A stretch of DNA of 64,000 nt from Lytechinus pictus (Eukaryota). Made by a program: the position numbers and the translations under genes. The stretch lies in assembly GCF_037042905.1 (NCBI RefSeq), contig NC_087256.1, positions 10,230,001 through 10,294,000 of the forward strand. The letters are read 5' to 3'. How positions within the stretch are numbered: the first letter of the stretch is position 1; each line of letters begins with the position of its first letter. The notes beneath the pieces were generated by a model that made no database searches, had not been told where the DNA came from, and worked only from the letters and a program-made list of their open reading frames with translations. Below, in pieces: positions 573 through 24,251 of the stretch.

Positions 573-2045
573 CTGTTCCAAAATATAATAAATAATAAGA
601 ATGAGACAAACTTATATGAGAGAAGATGGGTGGAATATTTGAATAACAGCAAAATCTGGAAGGGCCATAACTTTTGATAGAAAAGCTAGAAAATGATGAA
701 TATTTTCACATCAGAAGTGTTGAAACAATTCCAAGTGGTGCCTAAAACTTACCCGCAAGGCATGCATGGAACCATGTGACAGGGCCTTAACACGATTAAT
801 GTCTAGAGCCATGAGTGCCGACTTTTAAAAGATGCACCACCCCATATATTCGCTATCATGGCTATTGTTGTCGCCTATGAGGTCAATACCGTTATGTTTT
901 GACCGCATTGGTACTAGGAGCATGAGAAGTGGTCTCTACAGTACAGTATAAATGCATATCACCATAATTTATTAAAAACACGATTTGGGTATCAATGAAA
1001 CAAAAACAATCACTACCATGCCCCCACACTCCTGTAGTCCTTATACTATGGCACTGCGCCACTGCACAGAGTGGTCATGCATGCCATCGCAATTTTCACA
1101 CACGACATTTGAAAAATATTGAACGTGCCCTCAACGGCAACTGGCATGTAATAATAGTCATGACACAAGTATGCCCAAGACTCTTGATCTTTGTGCTTGG
1201 ACAGTTTTAACCTCATGTTTCTGTATGGCCATGGCCATGCATTTGACTCCAGAGTAGATCTAAGTACGGTAGTTTCTAATGTTAATTAATGATGATGGAA
1301 CAGAAATAAAGAAATGAAAAGAAAAGGGAAGAAAATATAAAAGACAAACAAGAGAAAACAAAAGAAAAAATGAAAAGAAAAAAATAGAAACGAGAAACAA
1401 AAGATTACATAAAAAAACAAGAGTAAAAACAACATTAACCATGTTAACTAGCCTTTTTAACAAACAAAATAGGATCCAGAACTGTAGGTCTTTCTAGATT
1501 AGATCTAGTAACATTATAATTTAGATCTAGATCTAGGCTTAACGTGAACTTAAGTTCTTTTGAGTTCAAGTAACTAACAACATTTCAACCACTCTCGTCA
1601 AGCCAAGGGTTCATTACATGCTGCCGCACACAGGAAAATCAAGCCATAGAAGTCGTGTGTTGTGGAAGTGGAATCGCAGCACGCGCGACCCACTAGTTAG
1701 AAATCCACTACCAAACGCGGTTCATGGTGCGAGGTTAGTATGATACTAACCTCGCAATACGTGTGAGTGCATTTCAACATGATGTAAATTACCTCGGGCG
1801 AAGTTTGTGCAGGCTCCACTCCACTTCACTACCGCTACACTACCGTCCACCTACCCGAACTTCGAGACCGTGAACTCGATCTGATATTCCAAGTGACAAA
1901 GGTGGGATTTTATGGGGGGAAAATATAAAATTCATGCAACATCACAATCTTTAAAAACAATTAAAACTAACATTTTTACTTTACACAAAGTTTCACTTCT
2001 TTTCCATGCTTCTATCAGTCTCAAAATTGGTGATTTAGAGCTAAC

Positions 2046-4094
2046 TTCTTTGTTGTTCTTCCCCCCGTATTCGAGGATCAGCGGCTATCCGCAGGTTGGT
2101 TGTTGTGTTGAAGTAATTTCTCTAAGCGAATATGATGAATTATAAGAATGTATCTGAGGCAGTGGGTCATAACATTGGCAGCAAGAGTGACATATAGGTG
2201 CGAGGAGGGTAATAACATATTAGTGGCAAGGGTGAGGGGATGAGCAGAGGTGAAAGCTTGGCTAACTGAAGCAGGGAGGCTTAGAGATAAGACATGTTGA
2301 ATGAGAACAGACCGTTGGGGTTTGAGGGTTGGGCAGGAAGCAAGGAATTGGTGGAGCTTTCTTCCTCCGTTGAGCAAAGTGGCACTGGGAGACTTGCCTA
2401 TGGTCTTCAGTCTTTGTTGTGTTAGGTAGGTGCTTGTCAGAAGTTGGGAGCAAAGTCTTGCAGCAATACGGAGGTATGAAGGTAGTGCAGGGGGGAACAG
2501 ACTGCTAGGGCTTGGACATTGCTTCCAGAAGGCAAGAGTGTGCTTCTCCTGAATGGCATCAACTAGGCCAGCATTGTGCTTCTTGAAGATGGCCTGGCGG
2601 CACAGTCTTTTCTAGGTGAGGTAGTTGATGCTCAGGGTGCCAGACAGGATGGCAGGCAAGCTGTATTTGGCGATTAGCTGCTTCCAGGAGGAGATGAAAG
2701 GGACATCGGCAGAGAGAGCATTTAGAAGTATCCTGTGCTCAAACCTATCGCTTGGTAGAGTAACCAGTTGCCCGAGAGTCATCAAGGTGTTAAGGTCGAT
2801 CTGCATAGAGAGAGGGATAATTTTGGTAAGGATTATGCTTCTGGGAGCCCTAGGAACTTTTTTAAGAGAAGGGCCTGCGCTGAGTCTAGCTTATCCCTGG
2901 ACCTCTTGGTAACTCTAATGGCAACAATGCCATATAGCATCCTAGGAATGCAGTAGGTGGTCCATAACTTGGCAATGGTTGGAGGCCAGAAGTTGTTTCT
3001 TGAAGCCGAACCACCTAGCAGAGCAAATATGGAGTTATATCCCTTGGCAATGATGTTCGGCGCAGGATCTTGAGAAGTTGAAGACTTGGTGACACCAAGA
3101 AGGGGATGCTGACTGACTTCTTGAACTTCCTCTTCATTCAGGTACCAAGTGTGCTTGAGGTGGTCTTGCCCATTAAAGGCGAGGATTGCACTTTTTGATG
3201 GGTTGATCTTGTACTTCCATGTGGTTGCATAGGTATGGGTAAGATTCAGCATGCATTGAAGTACTTTGGCTGAGGAAGCTATGAGGGCCACATCATCAGC
3301 TAGAACAATTACCCCAGCATACAGGTTTTGGCAGTGACATCCAAGATCTTCGTCTCTTAGCAACTTTATCAAGCCATCAATAAAGATGTTGTAGAGAAGA
3401 GGGGAGAGGATTCCTCCTTGTCTCACACCCTTCTGAAGAGGAAAGGAGCAGCTGGCATCCCCTTTCCATAATACTCTGCTGGATGCACCGTTGTACGTTT
3501 CCACCAATGTAGACTGAGCTTCGAGCGGTATAGGAGTGTCAGCTAGCTTTTGAAAGAGGCCAGGGTGCCAGACACAATCAAAAGCTTTAGCAGCATCCAA
3601 GAGGGCAAGATATGTTGGCTTCTTCCGAGATGTATTCAGCTCAATAAGCATCTCAAGGGTTATTGAAGCGAGAATACAGGACTTTGAGGCTTGGAATCCA
3701 AAGTGAAGTTTGTCAGGTGTGTTGACTTCAACCAAAGAGTCCTCAATCTTAGGTTTTAGGGCAATTTCCAAGAGTTTTGACAGAGTTGGGGTCAGGGAGA
3801 TGCCTCTGTAGCTAGAGGGTTCGCTGACCGGTTTGCTCCCTCCTTTGTGCAGTGGGATAATCACTGCTTCCTTCAATGATGCTGGAAGATGTGCCAGTTT
3901 GATGGAGTTTTGGAGGAGAATGGGAGGTCCACTGTTGAGGGTTTGCCTGCTTTGTTTGACTTTACCAGGCTGTAGAACAAGGAGCTGTTCATGTCATTTG
4001 CCGACTCTATCTTTCCTTGCACTTTGAGTCTGTTGGAGGCTTCAGATTGTCTCAGCTCAGGACTCTCCTGAAGTCCTTTTTGGCTTCCAAGTAG
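2046..4094 (-). mobile_element. 5'-truncated, frameshifted non-LTR retrotransposon (RTEX-like)
   Basis: ORF 2833-3876 has RT motifs YRGISL, FGFQ, LDAAKAFD, GVRQGGILSP and LADD. A broken C-terminal C..C..H..C knuckle lies near 2330-2390. (AAG/AAC)-like tail at about 2046-2060. Confidence 0.85.
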
Positions 4095-4215
4095 GATTTC
4101 ATATCGCATCCGCATGCGATGTTTTGAAATCGGCAGCGAATTATTTATACGTGTGAGGAACTTCATGTTGGCTCTAAATCACCAATTTTGAGACTGATAG
4201 AAGCATGGAATAGAA

Positions 4216-5069
4216 TAGACAGGAATAACCGTCGTTTCTGGGGATTTATTCAACAATTTCTGACATTTTACTATAATCCCCATTCACCGACGGTAGTGTG
4301 TTAGTGCGAGCCTGCATGTGTAATCTGGTCGGCAATTCGGAGGACGGGTTTTGTCCAGATTTCAATTTCTTTTAGATTCTAAATGACATTATATTATCTT
4401 GAACGCGAAGGCCCACTATTTTTGTTATCTAGACTCTAATCTTTCTTTTGATACTATGTAAGTTCTATAAAATATCGAAAATATACGTTACCGATGAGTT
4501 ATTCCTCGGATTATTCCTTATTTTTCTAATTTTCTGCCGGAGAGGAAAAAATGGCAGCCATCAACGAGTTGTGCTTTTATCAAGGCTATCCGATTAAATT
4601 TTCGATATCCTGGCCAATCAATGCGAGCGACAAGTTCCGAACGCACGCACATCTACAAGCGCAAAGCAGTGGCACAAATCGTGATATATAGCGACTGGTA
4701 AATACGTCTGTAAGGATGATGACGTCATCAAAGATGGCAACTTACGTTGACCAACGAAAGGATCGAAGATGCCGATGTTTCGATCATCATTTGAAAGGAA
4801 TTAGCGGTAACTGCGGTCTAAGGTACGATATTTCTGAATTTTAAACATTTTTTCGTAAATATGGATGTGATTTCTTTTTCATAATGTGACATTTTATGAA
4901 CAAAAAAACGATCGGAAAATCGGGTTTCCGCCGAATGTTAGATCTAACGTTACTGCTAATACGTTGTCTGTACGTACGGGCCTCCAAGCTCTTCAGTCTA
5001 TGTATTGGTGAGTGAGCCAACGTAGTTCAGCGGAACAACCAAAATACAGAGACTGAAGCTTTTGGTCTA
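4216..5069. mobile_element. Non-autonomous DNA transposon, TAGAC..GTCTA family (copy C1), 9-bp TSD
   Basis: TSD ggaatagaa at 4207-4215 and 5070-5078. The right-end ~80 bp is shared with copies at 20784 and 46308. Confidence 0.85.
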
Positions 5070-6421
5070 GGAATAGAAGTGAAACTTTGTGTAAAGTAAG
5101 AATATTAGTTTTGTTTTTAAAGATCATGATGTTGCATGAATTTTATATTTTCCCCCCATAAAATCCCACCTTTGTCACTTGGAATATCAGATCGAGTTCA
5201 CGGTCTCGAAGTTCGGGTAGGTGGAGCGTAGTGTAGCGGTAGTGAAGTGGAGCCTCCACGAACTTCGCTCGAGGTAGATATAATTCAATTGCACTCACAT
5301 TAGTACGAGGTTAGTATATACTAACCTCGTACACCGAACCGTGTTTGACCCTTGATTTTGAAGTAGTCGGCAAACATCGCTTCATTGCTGAAGTAATATT
5401 TGCCGAAACTCCTTCTCGCTACTCACCGGGGCTCTTTCCGGTAAGTAGCAATACATTAAAAAATTAAAAATGTAATTTTAATATAATAATCGGTCAAAAA
5501 GAGCAAATTTCGCTTACCTCGGCCTGGAAAGTAACTTCGCTTGTCTCTTCTATGGAAATACAAGGAGGCCCGTTGGTGGCCCTAATAAATTTCACAACCT
5601 TGATTCAGCTCCTCGGTAATTTTATAACTGTGTCTAAATTCTTTGAATGCACAATTCTTATGATTAATTTACTAATTATGGGCACCAATAAATGAAATAC
5701 CTTCAAAAACATAATTCAAGATTATTATTGGCGATGATAACACTTTTCTGCAATTAATTTAAAACGATGACTAATAAAGAAAAATTGAAAAAAATATACG
5801 TGCCTGGAACGAAACCAGCAGGACAGGCTTTAACGAACATCAATAATACGGTATACCAGTCTTTACAATGAAAAGATTGGACACTTCACGGACTTTGCGT
5901 AATGACCTGCGTCAATTTGCGTGTAAAATAGTGTAGGTGCCTAGTCTTTCCCTTGTCGTGTCTTTGATATGAATATAAATCGCGCGCCCTCTTTAGACGA
6001 AAATTGATATCGGCGCTGACCAAATTTTATCTCCGTGAAATCTTCACTAAAGATCAAGAAAATATACATATTGTTTAGAAGAAACTTCAAGGAGAAGTCA
6101 CGGAAGGATCTAAATGATTGGGTAAGTGTCATAGCAGAATGTGAAATCCCTAATTATGTGTGATGTTTTATGTGGGCGAAAGCCCAGTAGTATATGGATG
6201 TGTCGTGTGTGTCGCGTTATTATGAATGATATTCCTTCGCACGCGAGATGATATGAGCCCATGGGTGATAACTGATATAATTGTAAATAAGTTAGTCTAC
6301 TTAAAAATAATAAATCTAATTAATAAAAGCTAAAGAGAAATATATAAATAAAAGCAAATATTTTTTTTTTCAAAGAGCAAAAACAGTTTTGCCTTCAAAA
6401 CCAAGGATAGAAAGAAAGACA

Positions 6422-17824: not shown

Positions 17825-20246
17825 CTTGGTCTGTAATTCCTTAGTCTAAAAAATCTTGGTCTCAATGTGTCACACCTGTAGATTTGGGGGGGGGGGATAA
17901 AGGAAGAAAATCGCAAATGATACATTAAGCCCTTGTCAAGGAAAGTTGTGGGTCTGAACCAGGTCATGAATTATTTATTTGGATTTACTATAGGCTTTAT
18001 TTTAAGTCCTCCCTTTTCATTTCTTATATTATTACGAAGGCCTTATTATACTCAAATGTCATTTGCATTTATTTTAAGTTGTTTTTGCATGCTTTCATTT
18101 AAAATTATTGATGTATATATTCGATTTGATGTGCATATTTTTGTACTCATTGTTATTAGAAATGAAATGAATAAATTAATTGAAATGAACTGATTAAAAT
18201 TTGTCTCCAGGCTGTTAATGCTATAGATTTCAAACAAATAGGCCTACAAACATTTTTAAGAATTCAAACAAAGAAAATAAAATCAAGTAATAAGTTTTCT
18301 CCAACAATACCACAAGGGTTACACATGCAACTGTTGTGTGAAGGCAGCCGTCGATCAGCTGTGATCATGAAGGCACTCCGATTGCCAAGTGGTTATGACA
18401 ATAATGGATTTTGGACTAGTCCTTAGACTCCTTACTCCTTAAATTTCTTCAATTTCACTAAAGATATCAGGGAGCCTTCTAAATAACAGCAGCTATTCAA
18501 TATATCTATAGGTCTACATCTTCCTGGCTGAGGTGAGCTGTTCTGAGCGGGATATAGAATTGAGATTTCGAAATTAGGGGGATCATAACCAATTACTCCA
18601 AATAATCCAAGGAATTTTCTTTTTAAAATAGGTGATCTAGTCCTACCTTATAAGCATGTAAAAAGAGGAAGCAGCAATTATTTTTTATTGGAAGGGGAGC
18701 AAATGGGAAAGATGATCATGACATTAACATTATGCCGATATTGCAACTATACTAGTAGTCTGTCTATATCGTCTCCAAAGACTGTGGTGAATTTTATTTA
18801 TTTCTGACCAATGCCATTGGGGGTTACATACACCATATACACTATCAACACTCAAATCGTACTAGGCCTACACCAAAATTTGACGGAATAAGTCACAACT
18901 CATTGCTGATTATTATCTCAATCTAACTTTACCTTTCTAAATTTGTCAGATATAACCCTTTCCATATTTTTTCCAATTTTCGTGGAGGGGACATATGGTA
19001 TAATCTATCATAGTCTTCATGGTCTTGCCTATATTTTTTAACCACAAATAAGAATAGGGCATCAAAAAATCACAATGTCACTCCGCGCTCAAGGTAGGGC
19101 TTTGATCTACCTAATAATAGTATTAGTAGTAATAGTAACCTTGTTCATTGAATGAGCTCTTCGTGCCACACGCGCCATACTCTAACTTGGACGTATTTTT
19201 GGCACAATTTTTTTTTTCCTTTTTTATTTGATATCTAGAATCTACCGGCATATATCCCCAGTCAGACTAACAAACACAACACGAGTCTGAACTGGATCCT
19301 CCTGGAATTTTACTTTTTCTTCCGTGGTTTCCGAATCCAAAATAGTACAGCAAAAGCAACAAATTATATTCGTCACTTTGAATGTTATAGGTGAGATAAT
19401 TAGACTTCGAAATGTAGATAACATAATGCCATGGTTGCAATTGAATCGCGCGCGGCGGAGCTGCGACTTGCTTCTTTCGTGTACCGGTACAAGCTCGGCC
19501 TCGGGGACCGGGCCGAACAAACAATTAATCGCATGCATGCGTGAAAACGGCCACGGAATGGTCGTCCAGTACAATCAACCCAAATCGTTTTAAAAAAAAT
19601 CATTTTTACTGAGGTTAGGGGGAAACCATGAAAGATTCATTTCGTGGCGCTAATGCAGTTTTGCACCGGCCGATTACCAAATACCAGCATACCTCATCAC
19701 CAATAGTTCAGTAATACTAATAGTTGTTCCCAAATCACATCTCTGAGTCTCACCACTTGTTCACTGCAACCATCCTGCCTGTGGGGAATCTACAGCAGGT
19801 AGGACTATGGAGTATGGTATGCCAATGTTGTACAGAGCACACACTTTAAAAAATCATTAAAATATCACTTTTGTGACCAATATTACTAATTTCCATACAG
19901 TTGCAATTTATTTTTCATTAGTAACTTGGAAATAATTATTGTATTCACCAGAGCGCTCAAAAACTTGATTTTGGGGCATATTTTTGTGTACGCCCTCTAT
20001 TGGTGGAAAGTAAATATGGCAAGAAAATTTTCATTTTTTGATCTCTATTTTTAATTAAGAAAAAATAATTCAAAGAATCAAATTTACTTAAGAGCCAAGT
20101 TGTATGATGAATAGGTGTAATGGAAACTTTCAGTGTAAAACAAATCAAGCATTTGTCCCAAAGAAAAAGAGAAAATAAGCCAAACATTGCCACCCTTATT
20201 TTGCCACACATGGAGATATAACTGAGAACAAGGTTATATCATAACC

Positions 20247-20774
20247 TAACCCAGAGAGCTCCCGCCCGCGCAGCGGGCGGGAGCCCAGAAGCTTACCGTG
20301 TATTTTACCATTGTCACCGGACTAGGGTGATTTATGGTCTAAATATTTCTCCAAATGAATTGTGAAAACAGAAAGTATACAATTACCACGATTATATGGA
20401 TGAAGGTCTAACGAGTGGCAGATTCCTGACATCTGGGCACAGTCTGGAACCTCAAAAAAACGAAAAGTTCTCTCCTTCTACCCCGTCTCGATCGGCCATT
20501 TTTGTTAAAAATCGTAACAAAATGGCCGATCGAGACTGGGTAGAAGGAGAGAACTTTTCGTTTTTTTGAGGTTCCAGACTGTGCCCAGATGTCAGGAATC
20601 TGCCACTCGTTAGACCTTCATCCATATAATCGTGGTAATTGTATACTTTCCGTTTTCACAATTCATTTGGAGAAATATTTAGACCATAAATCACCCTAGT
20701 CCGGTGACAATGGTAAAATACACGGTAAGCTTCTGGGCTCCCGCCCGCGCAGCGGGCGGGAGCTCTCTGGGTTA
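20247..20774. mobile_element. Palindromic (foldback) element family B, complete copy 2 (TAACC..GGTTA), 9-bp TSD
   Basis: 528-bp almost perfect palindrome. TSD atcataacc at 20238-20246 and 20775-20783. Confidence 0.9.
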
Positions 20775-20783
20775 ATCATAACC

Positions 20784-21235
20784 TAGACAGCTGGCAGCCG
20801 TCTGTTTCGAGGAGTTTTTTAACATTTTTTTTTTTTTTAATTTCTCCTCATACACAGACGGCTCGCTAGCGTGCAGCCACCATTAGGGGACTTGCAATGC
20901 AAAATCCCCCCGTCGGGGCTCTTCAATTTTTGTCTTTAATGAGTAAAAATTTTGAAAATTAACGCGACCAAAATTCAAATTAATATTCCCTCTTGGCATC
21001 AATTGCCAAAAAACCGAGAAAAATCAAGTTAAAAGGAACAAAAACAGTGACTTACCTCGGCTGTCGCGCAAATTCACTTCCCCGTTTTATCCGATCTTTA
21101 ATAAGTACATAAACATATGGCCATTGAGTCCCCTGTACAGATCGCGCTAGAACTTCGGTCTCTGTATTTGGTGAGTGAAGCCAACGGAGTTCAGCTGAAC
21201 AACCAAATTTAACAGAGACCGAAGCTTTTGGTCTA
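20784..21235. mobile_element. TAGAC..GTCTA family, copy C2, 9-bp TSD
   Basis: TSD atcataacc at 20775-20783 and 21236-21244. Closely similar to 46308-46766 along its length. Confidence 0.9.
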
Positions 21236-21316
21236 ATCATAACCTTGTTCATTGAATGAGTGTCTCTCACCGAGTCTCGGACTCGGTCACGTCACATTTC
21301 GAGGGCAATTTATACC

Positions 21317-21820
21317 CAACTTGTTCACTGCAACCATCCTGCCTGTGGTGGGGAATCTACATGTAGGACTATGGTATGCCAATGTTGTACAGAGCACACA
21401 CTTTTAAAAATCATTGAAATATCACTTTTGTGACCAAAATTACTAATTTCCATACAGTTGCAATTTATTTTTCATTAGCTTTGGTAATAATTTTTGTATT
21501 CACCAGAGCGCTCAAAAACTTGATTTTTTGGCATATTTTTGTGTACGCCCTCTATTGGTGGAAAGTAATATGGCAAGAAAATTTTCATTTTTTGATCTCT
21601 GTTTTTAATAAAGAAAAAAATAATTTAAAGAATCAAATTTACTTAAGAGCCAAGTTGTATGACGAATAGGTGTAATATAAAACTGTCAGTGTAAAAATAA
21701 TCAAGCATTTGTCCCAAAGAAAAAGAGAAAATAAGCCAAACATTGCCACCCTTATTTTGCCACACATGGAGATATAACTGAGAACAAGGTTATATCATAA
21801 CCTTGTTCATTGAATGAGTG
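21317..21820. mobile_element. Element E copy 2 (uninterrupted)
   Basis: Direct repeat of E copy 1. Flanks tttatacc/aatatacc. Subterminal palindrome gaacaaggttat-atc-ataaccttgttc. Confidence 0.7.
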
Positions 21821-24251
21821 AATATACCAACCTCTTTTCCAAATATCGCGATCGGAAACGGCTGTATTTCAGCTTTGATCTCGATGTCGTCGTTCGAATC
21901 CTCAGACATCACTTCGCGGATCGCATGGATTCGCCGTGCGCCGTAATGTTGATATGGACTGAAGTTAGCATCCAAATCATGCGAACATAGTCATAAGGCG
22001 AACAAACTGCCAGCATGCTGTAGGCGAATCTTTTGGTCGCATAACTTCAGTCCATATCAACATTACGGCGAATCCTAGTCTTGAGGATGCAATGATGATG
22101 ACTTTTAAAATAATGAAATATACTTCTTCATCATTGACGTCTTGACACTCTTCCCATAGTCGCAGAAGAGAAGGACCAAAACAAAGATTGATTTTTTGAT
22201 TTTGATTTTGATTTTGATTTTGATCATTGATTTTTACACCTTTCAAAGGTGTTTAAAATTATAATATAAAAATGTGAATAAATTAAGGTTTATTACCTAA
22301 CTGATGCCGAGTAGACCCCTCGATCCACATGTAAACAACGTAAGTACAATAGCGTCGACCCTTGAACCGCTTATGTATGACGTACTTCCGGCTAGCAATG
22401 CCGTTTTGACGAACAATTTATAGATAAAAAATATTTCACAAATACTAAAATTTATTACGTGATTGTAAATAATTATTAGTATTATACTACCGGTAATTAT
22501 TTATAATTACGTGATAAATTTTAACATTTGCGAAATAATATTTTTTTTGTCGACGCTATTGTACTTACGTTGTTTACATGTGGATCGAGGGGTCTACTCA
22601 GCATCAGTTTATAGGTAAGAAACCTTATTTTTATCACATTTTTATATTATAATTTTTAAAACCTTCCTACGCATTAGGTGTAGGAAGGTGTAAAAATCAA
22701 TGAAATTCATTAAATTCAAGTGAATGAGGGAAATCCATCTTTGTTTTGGTCCTTCTCTTCTGCGACTATGGGAAGAGTGTCAAGACGTCAATGATAAGAA
22801 GTATATTTCATTATTTTAAAAGTCATCATCATTGCGTCCTCAAGACTAGGCGAATCCAAGCGATCCGCGAAGTGATGTCTGAGGATTCGAACAACGACAT
22901 CGAGATCAAAGCTGAAATACAGCCGTTCCTGATCGCGATATTTGGAAGAGGTGGGTATATTGACCTAGAAATGTGACTGAGAGACTTGTCATGACATTTG
23001 GGAACAAGTATTGGTGATGAGGTATGCTGGTAATCGGCCGGTGTGAAACTGCATTAGCGCCCATTTCGTTTGGTCGTCGAAGCTTACCGAACATTTCTAA
23101 GCTATGCTTCTTCTTTCCAATCATGCAAATCTGTATTGATTTGCCGACCCTGCCTGGCTGAGAAAGTTGTTAGCATAAATAGTGGCAGAAGGGGGCGCTG
23201 TTAAAAAAAATCTGCTAATTAATAAAAAGATCTAGTATTAACCTGATTTGAAAAATGTCTTTTTTTTAATTTTCATGATTTTGTCTAATAATAGATCTAT
23301 CATATGTACACAGTCACACAGTGTAGATCTCGATCTAGACATTTACTAGTCTAAAATTAGATCTAGATGTAATAATCTAATTTCCTATTTCCACCTTATT
23401 TTAGTCTAGTATGACTGTGTGACATCGAGGGGGGGAGGGTTCTTCTTTTTATTTGGCAACCAGTCAATTTGACTATTTTTGCCATCATAAATATATTATT
23501 CACGTTCGTTGGAGATGGAATCACAAACCAATTAATACTTGAATAATTAATTAATTTATACATCTGCATTTGTACTTATTCTACTATATTTGAAATAACG
23601 TATACAATATTTTGTATGTGTATGCAATCCCACAGTATTGTAAGTCTATTCATTCTGTGTATGGGCATATGTATTTGTAATTTTGTAAACCTGTTGTGAA
23701 AGGAATTTCCAACACAGGACAATAAATACATTCAATTCAATTCAATATATATATTTATAGATGTATATAGAATGTATATATATATATATATATATATCTT
23801 CAAGACATATCTTTCTTATTTTCTTTTCTCTTTTTTTTTCCATTTCTTTCTTCCTTTTTTTTGTTAGGGTACCTACTACAAGGATTTAAAGTCAAGTAGG
23901 TTTGTCTCAAAAATTGAAATTAAATCAAAACCAGGGGTTTTACTGAAAATATGCTTAGATATATATACTAGTATGCAAGTAAACCCTGGATGGAGATGAC
24001 AGAGAAAGAAATGAGGAAAATCACAGGTCCAATCCAACACCCGTACTGGAGTATGGGGATACGTCTGTTGACAACGTCAGTGAAGTCTTGATCTTTCCCG
24101 GAGACAAGACACCTTTAAATCCTAGATCAAGATCTAGATCTATGTAGGCTTAGGCCTATTAATTTTTTAGATTTTTTCTAGATTTAACTCTAACTAAAAA
24201 GTCAAGGATTTTCAGAGTGAAGATTGAGGTCGATCTGAAAACATTAATTAA

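Follow-up and report, generated by a model that had tools for sequence, protein, structure and literature searches.

A 64,000-nucleotide stretch of the Lytechinus pictus genome (assembly GCF_037042905.1, contig NC_087256.1, positions 10,230,001 to 10,294,000 of the forward strand; hereafter the window, in whose own numbering its positions are given) contains two short DNA transposons with unrelated bodies, called B and C here, that lie one behind the other in a copy of a third repeat, the host repeat H. The two insertions are flanked and separated by three copies of the same 9-bp target-site duplication (TSD), ATCATAACC. Shared duplications of this kind recur across the 812-Mb assembly that was searched, and a palindromic target motif that is rebuilt by the termini of resident elements, together with regional clustering of insertions, probably explains them.

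Two transposons in one copy of a host repeat

From left to right the locus runs GAGAACAAGGTTAT, ATCATAACC, B, ATCATAACC, C, ATCATAACC and TTGTTCATTGAATGAGTG (Table 1). The window holds seven occurrences of ATCATAACC where 0.72 are expected, and none of 100 shuffles reached seven. Boundaries of B and C were set by comparison with family copies elsewhere, and each part of the locus is a repeat with at least several hundred copies. A sister copy of H, 1.56 kb downstream, displays the empty site (21780-21810), in which ATCATAACC occurs once, between GAGAACAAGGTTAT and TTGTTCATTG; the left flanks of the two host copies are 98% identical (124 nt) and their right flanks 100% identical (27 nt). A sequence-only reading of this DNA had described B and C as stacked at one site with an identical TSD present three times, and had recognized the empty target in the sister copy. 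Sequence and counts agree with this description, as does the single 9-mer in matching flanks, and its further claim that two families with unrelated bodies shared exactly the same cut is borne out by the family-wide 9-bp duplications described below.

Table 1. Features of the B/C insertion locus and of a related element in the window
Feature	Positions	Strand	Basis
Host repeat H copy 1, left of the insertions	19755..20237	+	Gap-free blocks 86-100% identical to 21319-21793; family limits from 40 genomic copies
TSD copy 1 (ATCATAACC)	20238..20246		Sequence read directly, 9-mer count
Element B, 528-bp non-autonomous foldback transposon, TAACCCAG..CTGGGTTA	20247..20774		Arms of 256 nt, 98% complementary
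TSD copy 2, common to B and C	20775..20783		Sequence read directly, 9-mer count, B-C junction
Element C, 452-bp non-autonomous transposon, TAGACAGC..TTTTGGTCTA (terminus also given as TTGGTCTA)	20784..21235	+	Family copies
TSD copy 3	21236..21244		Sequence read directly, 9-mer count
Host repeat H copy 1, rest, right of the insertions	21245..21262	+	100% identical to 21803-21820
Host repeat H copy 2 (sister), empty site	21319..21820	+	Hairpin 21782-21808, 9-mer 21794-21802
854-bp element with C-type ends, TAGACAGG..TTTTGGTCTA	4216..5069	+	9-bp duplication GGAATAGAA at 4207-4215 and 5070-5078

B and C belong to two distinct families, both of them young, non-autonomous and present in high copy number. 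A half-element query for B returned about 1240 first-look candidates, with top scored matches 97-100% identical, and 27 full B copies have 9-bp duplications and unrelated flanks. For C there are 2249 first-look candidates at about 97-98% identity, including 31 near-identical copies with 9-bp duplications, and the genome contains 3484 occurrences of the C-type right-end 12-mer versus 97 of its reversed control. A perfect 9-bp duplication in unrelated flanks was found for 54 of the 62 B and C copies examined elsewhere, a few others having 8 bp. Neither family has any coding content, and the overwhelming majority of B copies and of C copies are solitary. The left and right ends of C have TAGAC alone in common (5-nt terminal inverted repeats) and the ends of B and C only TA; a convincing subterminal motif common to B and C ends was looked for and not found. 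The B copies (L001-L030) split into two classes with 0-9 and 15-21 differences from the consensus, consistent with two orientations of a near-perfect palindrome.

The host repeat family has a length of 502 bp and about 2070 first-look candidates. None of the 40 scored copies, which are 92-95% identical, is interrupted at the insertion position, and the exact empty site is present in 503 genomic copies. About 14 nt from the 3' end of H lies a hairpin with a 12-bp stem, and the duplication sits 3 bp off the centre of this hairpin. Copies of H often occur in abutting or closely spaced tandem pairs (e.g., C10:35976283-35977277). The block formed by the two H copies with B and C sits within a structure of 3.4 kb whose two ends are inverted stretches, each about 95 nt long (19646-19740 and 22991-23061), and is adjoined by a 1.1-kb nested palindromic element (21834-22950).

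Junctions between element ends across the genome

Junctions were searched for in the whole genome using exact 12-nt end anchors and gaps of 0-30 bases. Over all pair types, the gap is exactly 9 bp in 56 of 88 end-to-end junctions. This spacing accounts for 15 of 26 junctions from C end to C start (head-to-tail), 20 of 27 C tail-to-tail junctions, and 6 of 9 that are head-to-head. It is also found in 6 of 10 junctions from B end to C start, with six different 9-mers (one more has a gap of 16, that is, 9 plus a 7-bp terminal extra), in 7 of 13 from C end to B start, again with six different 9-mers (GGCCTAGGC occurring twice), and in 2 of 3 from B to B. With 3484 C-type ends in 812 Mb, about 0.004 junctions are expected by chance per spacing and orientation; the observed numbers are thousands-fold above this. 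The junction 9-mers are nearly all distinct between loci, few being repeated.

At five loci, namely the window locus (L011), L007, L036, L042 and L049, an identical 9-mer is present three times around two elements, so that the junction is one duplication long and the same 9-mer also flanks the array, as in a double insertion. Three-element arrays were seen at L009 and L016. The sequence-only reading was thus right in substance: one duplication is recurrently re-used beside existing ends, across families, and repeat-spacer-repeat arrays are formed. It had named two findings that would speak against it, tandem junctions at chance level and a B-C pair that is always one fixed composite with the same internal 9-mer. 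Neither was encountered, as the count given above lies far from chance, both orders of B and C occur, and their 9-mers differ.

These data bear directly on an origin without transposition, in which unequal exchange or slippage between 9-bp duplicates, or the copying of B and C as a single composite unit, would have produced the arrays. Some same-family direct arrays do repeat one 9-mer at element-length spacing (GGCGTAGAC, 453 bp, on C13), and these may have grown by unequal exchange once an initial double insertion had taken place. Exchange cannot, however, join unrelated families or make inverted pairs, and a gap of exactly 9 bp was found in 13 junctions that mix B with C and in 26 C pairs that are inverted; unequal exchange is refuted for these arrays and ruled out as the general cause. 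The fixed composite is likewise ruled out, by junction 9-mers that vary at nearly every locus (six for the six B-to-C junctions) and by copies that are mostly solitary. As a general explanation, a non-transpositional origin is highly improbable.

Two features of individual junctions are recorded here. A 7-bp extra lies between the shared 9-mer and the TAGACAG of a C-type start at L007:1485-1491 (TAGAGTG) and at L036:645-651 (TAGGCCC). Among C-C junctions, GGCGTAGAC occurs twice, 453 bp apart (C13:23426229-23426714), and GGCAAAACT twice at a distance of 2033 bp (C11:6014314 and 6016347); these repeated junctions are either arrays of at least three elements or the result of local duplication after a double insertion.

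A target motif completed by element termini

Reconstruction of the empty sites of 44 solitary insertions revealed a palindromic target motif that lies outside the duplication, 5'-KCWN-N9-NWGM-3', in which N9 denotes the duplicated bases. Position -4 is K (G/T) in 84% of sites, -3 is C in 75% and -2 is W (A/T) in 92%, with the mirror image on the other side, and G is the first duplicated base in 44%. The motif is the same when B sites and C sites are analysed separately, and it reappears, more weakly, in the left flanks of 21 longer C-type elements that carry a helicase exon. The palindrome extends past the duplication, and the terminal nucleotides of the elements complete it: the C termini (..TCTA on one side of the junction and TAGA.. 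on the other) match the half-site at all informative positions, and the B terminus (..GTTA) matches at two of three. A composite site made of a C end, the duplication and the old half-site has a likelihood ratio of 55 (median) to 144 (mean) over background. Among tail-to-tail pairs, the spike at 9 comprises 20 sites versus 7 in the other 30 gaps of 0-30, which is about 86-fold over the local background; gaps of 31-60 hold a further 7 sites, and gaps of 171-200 hold 2. Given the regional clustering, the likelihood ratio of the motif predicts the height of this spike.

A secondary class of junctions has a gap of 4 and occurs only before B starts, being absent before C starts. This is what the motif predicts: the B start (TAACC followed by CAGA) holds an internal half-site five bases in, and the C start (TAGAC followed by AGCT) does not. 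Such 4-base junctions between a ..GTCTA end and a B start were seen at C3:34845900, C3:38515475, C3:43080719, C15:6209185 and L024:1491. At L024 the duplication of B is GTCTACAGG, and the 9-bp cut overlapped the apparent last five bases (GTCTA) of the neighbouring element end.

From these sequence comparisons, we regard restoration of the motif by element termini, combined with regional clustering, as the probable explanation for the shared 9-bp insertions. The transposase or transposases would make a 9-bp staggered cut at a palindromic motif that reaches past the duplicated bases. After insertion, each 9-bp duplicate would retain one original half-site and gain an element terminus on its other side, a C-type terminus (..GTCTA or TAGAC..) serving as a perfect half-site and a B end (..GTTA) as a partial one. 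The target would in this way be regenerated to the left and right of the resident element, frequently in improved form, and, given regional clustering, a second element would often hit the same 9 bp, generating arrays of alternating elements and 9-mers in either orientation and from either family. At the window locus C would have inserted first, followed by B into the left duplicate, which at that stage had the TAGA of C on its right; C was probably the earlier arrival because it is the more diverged of the two window copies from its family consensus (11 positions, compared with 3 for B). We infer that the motif, and not protein tethering, sets the exact position. The most economical account is that a mechanism already known from the P element operates here in a different and little-studied group of transposons.

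Several observations weigh against this reading. A whole-genome model based on the motif alone predicts about 1.6 re-insertions beside C-type right ends, and at least 42 were seen; a clustering of ends is therefore required, and within 60 bp it exceeds chance about 60-fold, the excess at 171-200 bp still being about 18-fold. Hot regions, nesting in repeat-rich DNA, local hopping and tethering are candidate causes. B ends are predicted to form about 3-fold fewer junctions, yet their rate per end equals that of C ends (6/~1240 vs 15/3484). The window site itself, TTAT-ATCATAACC-TTGT, has a motif score just ~2.6-fold over background, and at least four other copies of H have TA-ended insertions at the same position despite the poor score. 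The motif is based on 44-54 sites that were drawn from the best BLAST hits. Finally, a search for an autonomous partner with the same ends, as the sequence-only reading had proposed, found none: neither a transposase nor an intact helicase was found between TAGAC or TAACC ends.

Some of these points would be accommodated by active targeting of resident ends, in which a transposase that occupies the subterminal part of a resident element, or hairpins and end-like palindromes, tethers the incoming transpososome. One strand transfer would then take place at the bond that is cleaved on excision and the 9-bp stagger would do the rest, the motif being secondary. The roughly 25-fold shortfall of the motif-only genome-wide expectation, the 60-fold clustering of ends, the ability of B ends, which match the motif less well, to draw partners at the same frequency as C ends, and the recurrent hits on the host hairpin despite its low motif score all favour such targeting. 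On the other hand, the excess of the spike above its local background (~40- to 100-fold) is as large as the likelihood ratio of the motif, and the exact position needs no extra term. The clustering decays slowly, which resembles hot regions more than tethering at ends, solitary sites far from any element follow the same motif, and there is no obvious subterminal binding motif common to B and C. We consider end-directed targeting unlikely on balance, though it is the most probable of the rivals. The sequence-only reading had likewise proposed steering, to end-like palindromes or existing ends, and had pointed to the words GGTTA and TAACC in the target. Re-use beside ends is indeed far above chance, but active steering is not required for it, as the motif and clustering reproduce the spike. 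A role for GGTTA and TAACC is not supported, since neither word is in phase with the cut sites: TAACC lies inside the duplication, and GGTTA ends one base before it.

Recurrent insertion into H raises a more local alternative, in which the cruciform or hairpin of H is a hot spot that was hit independently by B and by C, the ends of the first element being irrelevant. Other H copies filled at the position used in the window, and with an identical 9-mer, were found at C14:14805900-14822571, C14:23765567-23765904, C13:23304888, C8:9488616, C5:52262629 and C5:19522277, the two on C5 being right-hand junctions. The two C14 insertions, of 16.6 kb and 307 bp, both start with TAACCCAGGG and have B-like ends. 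A hot spot is favoured by the low motif score of the site and by the presence of TA-ended insertions here in 5 of the 508 H copies that have the exact left context, two of these insertions starting with TAACCCAGGG. Some of the filled copies may nevertheless share descent, and a hot spot in H leaves the 55 other gap-9 junctions, in unrelated sequence, unaccounted for; we judge it improbable.

As a tentative suggestion of low probability, the transposase may not be limited to following a 4-nt half-site and may actively use resident ends and short hairpins of the GGTTA..TAACC type as landing pads, as a eukaryotic counterpart of IS30-type targeting. If true, landing pads would explain the ~60-fold clustering over tens of bases, the equal pull of the poorly matching B ends and the recurrent hits on the H hairpin.

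Relatives of the elements and comparison with known systems

B and C are probably cut-and-paste DNA transposons of AcademH type. AcademH elements are described, in articles citing Kojima 2020, as having 9-10-bp duplications and an element-borne helicase with DEAD and Helicase_C domains (PMC10045372, PMC10799480). The duplications of B and C fall in this range, and a DEAD-type helicase is represented by its first exon in longer elements that have C-type ends. One such element, 4 kb in length, lies 2.4 Mb downstream on the same contig (L062:2412-6407), with ends TAGACAGG..TTGGTCTA and a 9-bp duplication, GGAGAGGCC. It shares its left end with the 854-bp element in the window and with elements of 5.3 and 11.4 kb that carry the helicase exon; over its right 80 bases it is 86% identical to C. 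An exon about 500 bp from the left end matches the start of a DEAD helicase domain (E 7e-6), and a 128-aa zf-AD-like exon lies on the opposite strand near the right end; an ESM Atlas look-up of this second exon gave weak zf-AD-like leads only. The helicase and zf-AD-like exons are common to about 30 copies. There is a 5.3-kb variant and an 11.4-kb parent, the latter (L077 and L078) being indicated by the pairing of helicase-exon matches with opposite-strand first-exon matches.

The open reading frames of the 11.4-kb element have no Pfam domain, that of a transposase included, and no database relatives, and it is not demonstrably autonomous for this reason; its extra 7.4 kb is without recognisable coding capacity. 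A later helicase exon was not found in the 4-, 5.3- or 11.4-kb elements, and no copy in the genome joins the first helicase exon to a helicase core. A search of the whole database with the helicase exon returned mostly fragments and one 402-aa helicase. The best full-length relative of the exon (P0002, with DEAD and Helicase_C domains) belongs to another genome, where its gene is convergent to one that encodes DUF6589 and PHD domains.

In the L. pictus genome, DUF6589 has 26 matches, many of them in open frames of 1450-1854 aa; at least 12 lie in uninterrupted frames of this length (e.g., C12:11735571-11736542, C11:9109021, C11:9280131, C3:42736451, C7:30924102 and C2:64810042), which suggests several recently active transposase lineages. 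The 16.6-kb TAACCCAGGG-ended insertion in H has no match to the helicase query or to DUF6589 among the matches listed. A helicase at C10:32262305 (+) and a DUF6589 match at C10:32269949 (-) form a convergent pair. On C2, DUF6589 exons at two places are preceded, in the same orientation, by weak relatives of the zf-AD-like exon. DUF6589 may be the Academ transposase. The sequence-only reading had noted that the TSDs and TA..TA termini fit AcademH and had supposed that one transposase serves both families. The first proposal gains from the 9-bp duplications, the TA..TA ends and the helicase exon of the relatives, all of which fit AcademH, but no transposase was found within the same ends. The second may be correct, as the shared motif fits the same or closely related enzymes, but B and C ends have little beyond the terminal TA in common.

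The 854-bp element is nested in a 3.6-kb foldback (window 1747-5313, arms 1747-2045 and 4167-5313) that also carries a reverse-transcriptase fragment on the minus strand (2833-3876, RVT_1 E 5e-30). A site in the foldback arm (GGAAAAGAA context) is occupied by C elements at two other genomic loci (L038 and L044). Small palindromes of the form CGAGGTTA-N7-11-TAACCTCG occur at about 240 sites genome-wide, and those at window positions 1733-1751 and 5309-5326 are each self-contained. Insertion of the intervening DNA into one palindrome was considered and is probably not the case, as two copies of a self-contained palindrome with ~240 occurrences are present; the whole may instead be one large foldback with a hairpin within its arms.

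The closest parallel to the B/C arrays is the P element of Drosophila, whose terminal 3 nt restore a 14-bp palindromic target motif, so that repeat insertion takes place exactly 8 bp apart and occupied sites stay or become hot spots (Linheiro & Bergman 2008, PMC2577343). Double insertion is the origin of P tandems that have an 8-nt junction (McGurk & Barbash 2018, PMC5932611). As in the P element, the B/C motif extends past the duplicated bases, the last nucleotides of the elements rebuild a half-site, repeat insertions lie one duplication length apart, the junction spacers are composed like target sites, and the loci are independent. The present case differs in its duplication of 9 bp rather than 8, in a different, probably AcademH-type, superfamily and a deuterostome host, in arrays that mix two families with unrelated bodies and different ends, in C pairs that occur in all three orientations (15 head-to-tail, 20 tail-to-tail and 6 head-to-head), and in that B and C are short non-autonomous elements.

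Dimers of bacterial insertion sequences (IS) with the target duplication between copies are also mentioned in that literature (Dalrymple 1987; Prudhomme 2002, cited in PMC5932611). B and C resemble these dimers and IS30 in their element-duplication-element junctions and in the preference for ends or end-like sequences as targets. IS30 targets its own inverted repeats by an established protein-DNA recognition; the enzymes of these systems are prokaryotic, and B and C show only a 4-nt half-site resemblance. With AcademH, B and C share the 9-bp duplications; the longer C-type-ended elements keep a first helicase exon, and a DUF6589 and PHD gene is convergent to the best database relative of that exon. 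Unlike AcademH, B and C encode nothing. MuDR and Mutator-like elements (MULEs) make 9-bp duplications as well, and Dietrich et al. reportedly found in 2002 that the sequence flanking Mu duplications is non-random. C differs from MULEs in having just 5-nt terminal inverted repeats, and the helicase remnant in its relatives points elsewhere.

Restoration of the motif by element termini would extend the rule proposed for the P element to little-studied, helicase-associated DNA transposons of animals, and across families with unrelated bodies. It supplies a concrete target motif for the B/C-type group. For the annotation of transposable elements, duplications shared between neighbours should be expected, and such neighbours should not be merged into composite families. 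In the L. pictus genome, the same process would account for element-spacer-element arrays, which are possible seeds of satellite DNA.

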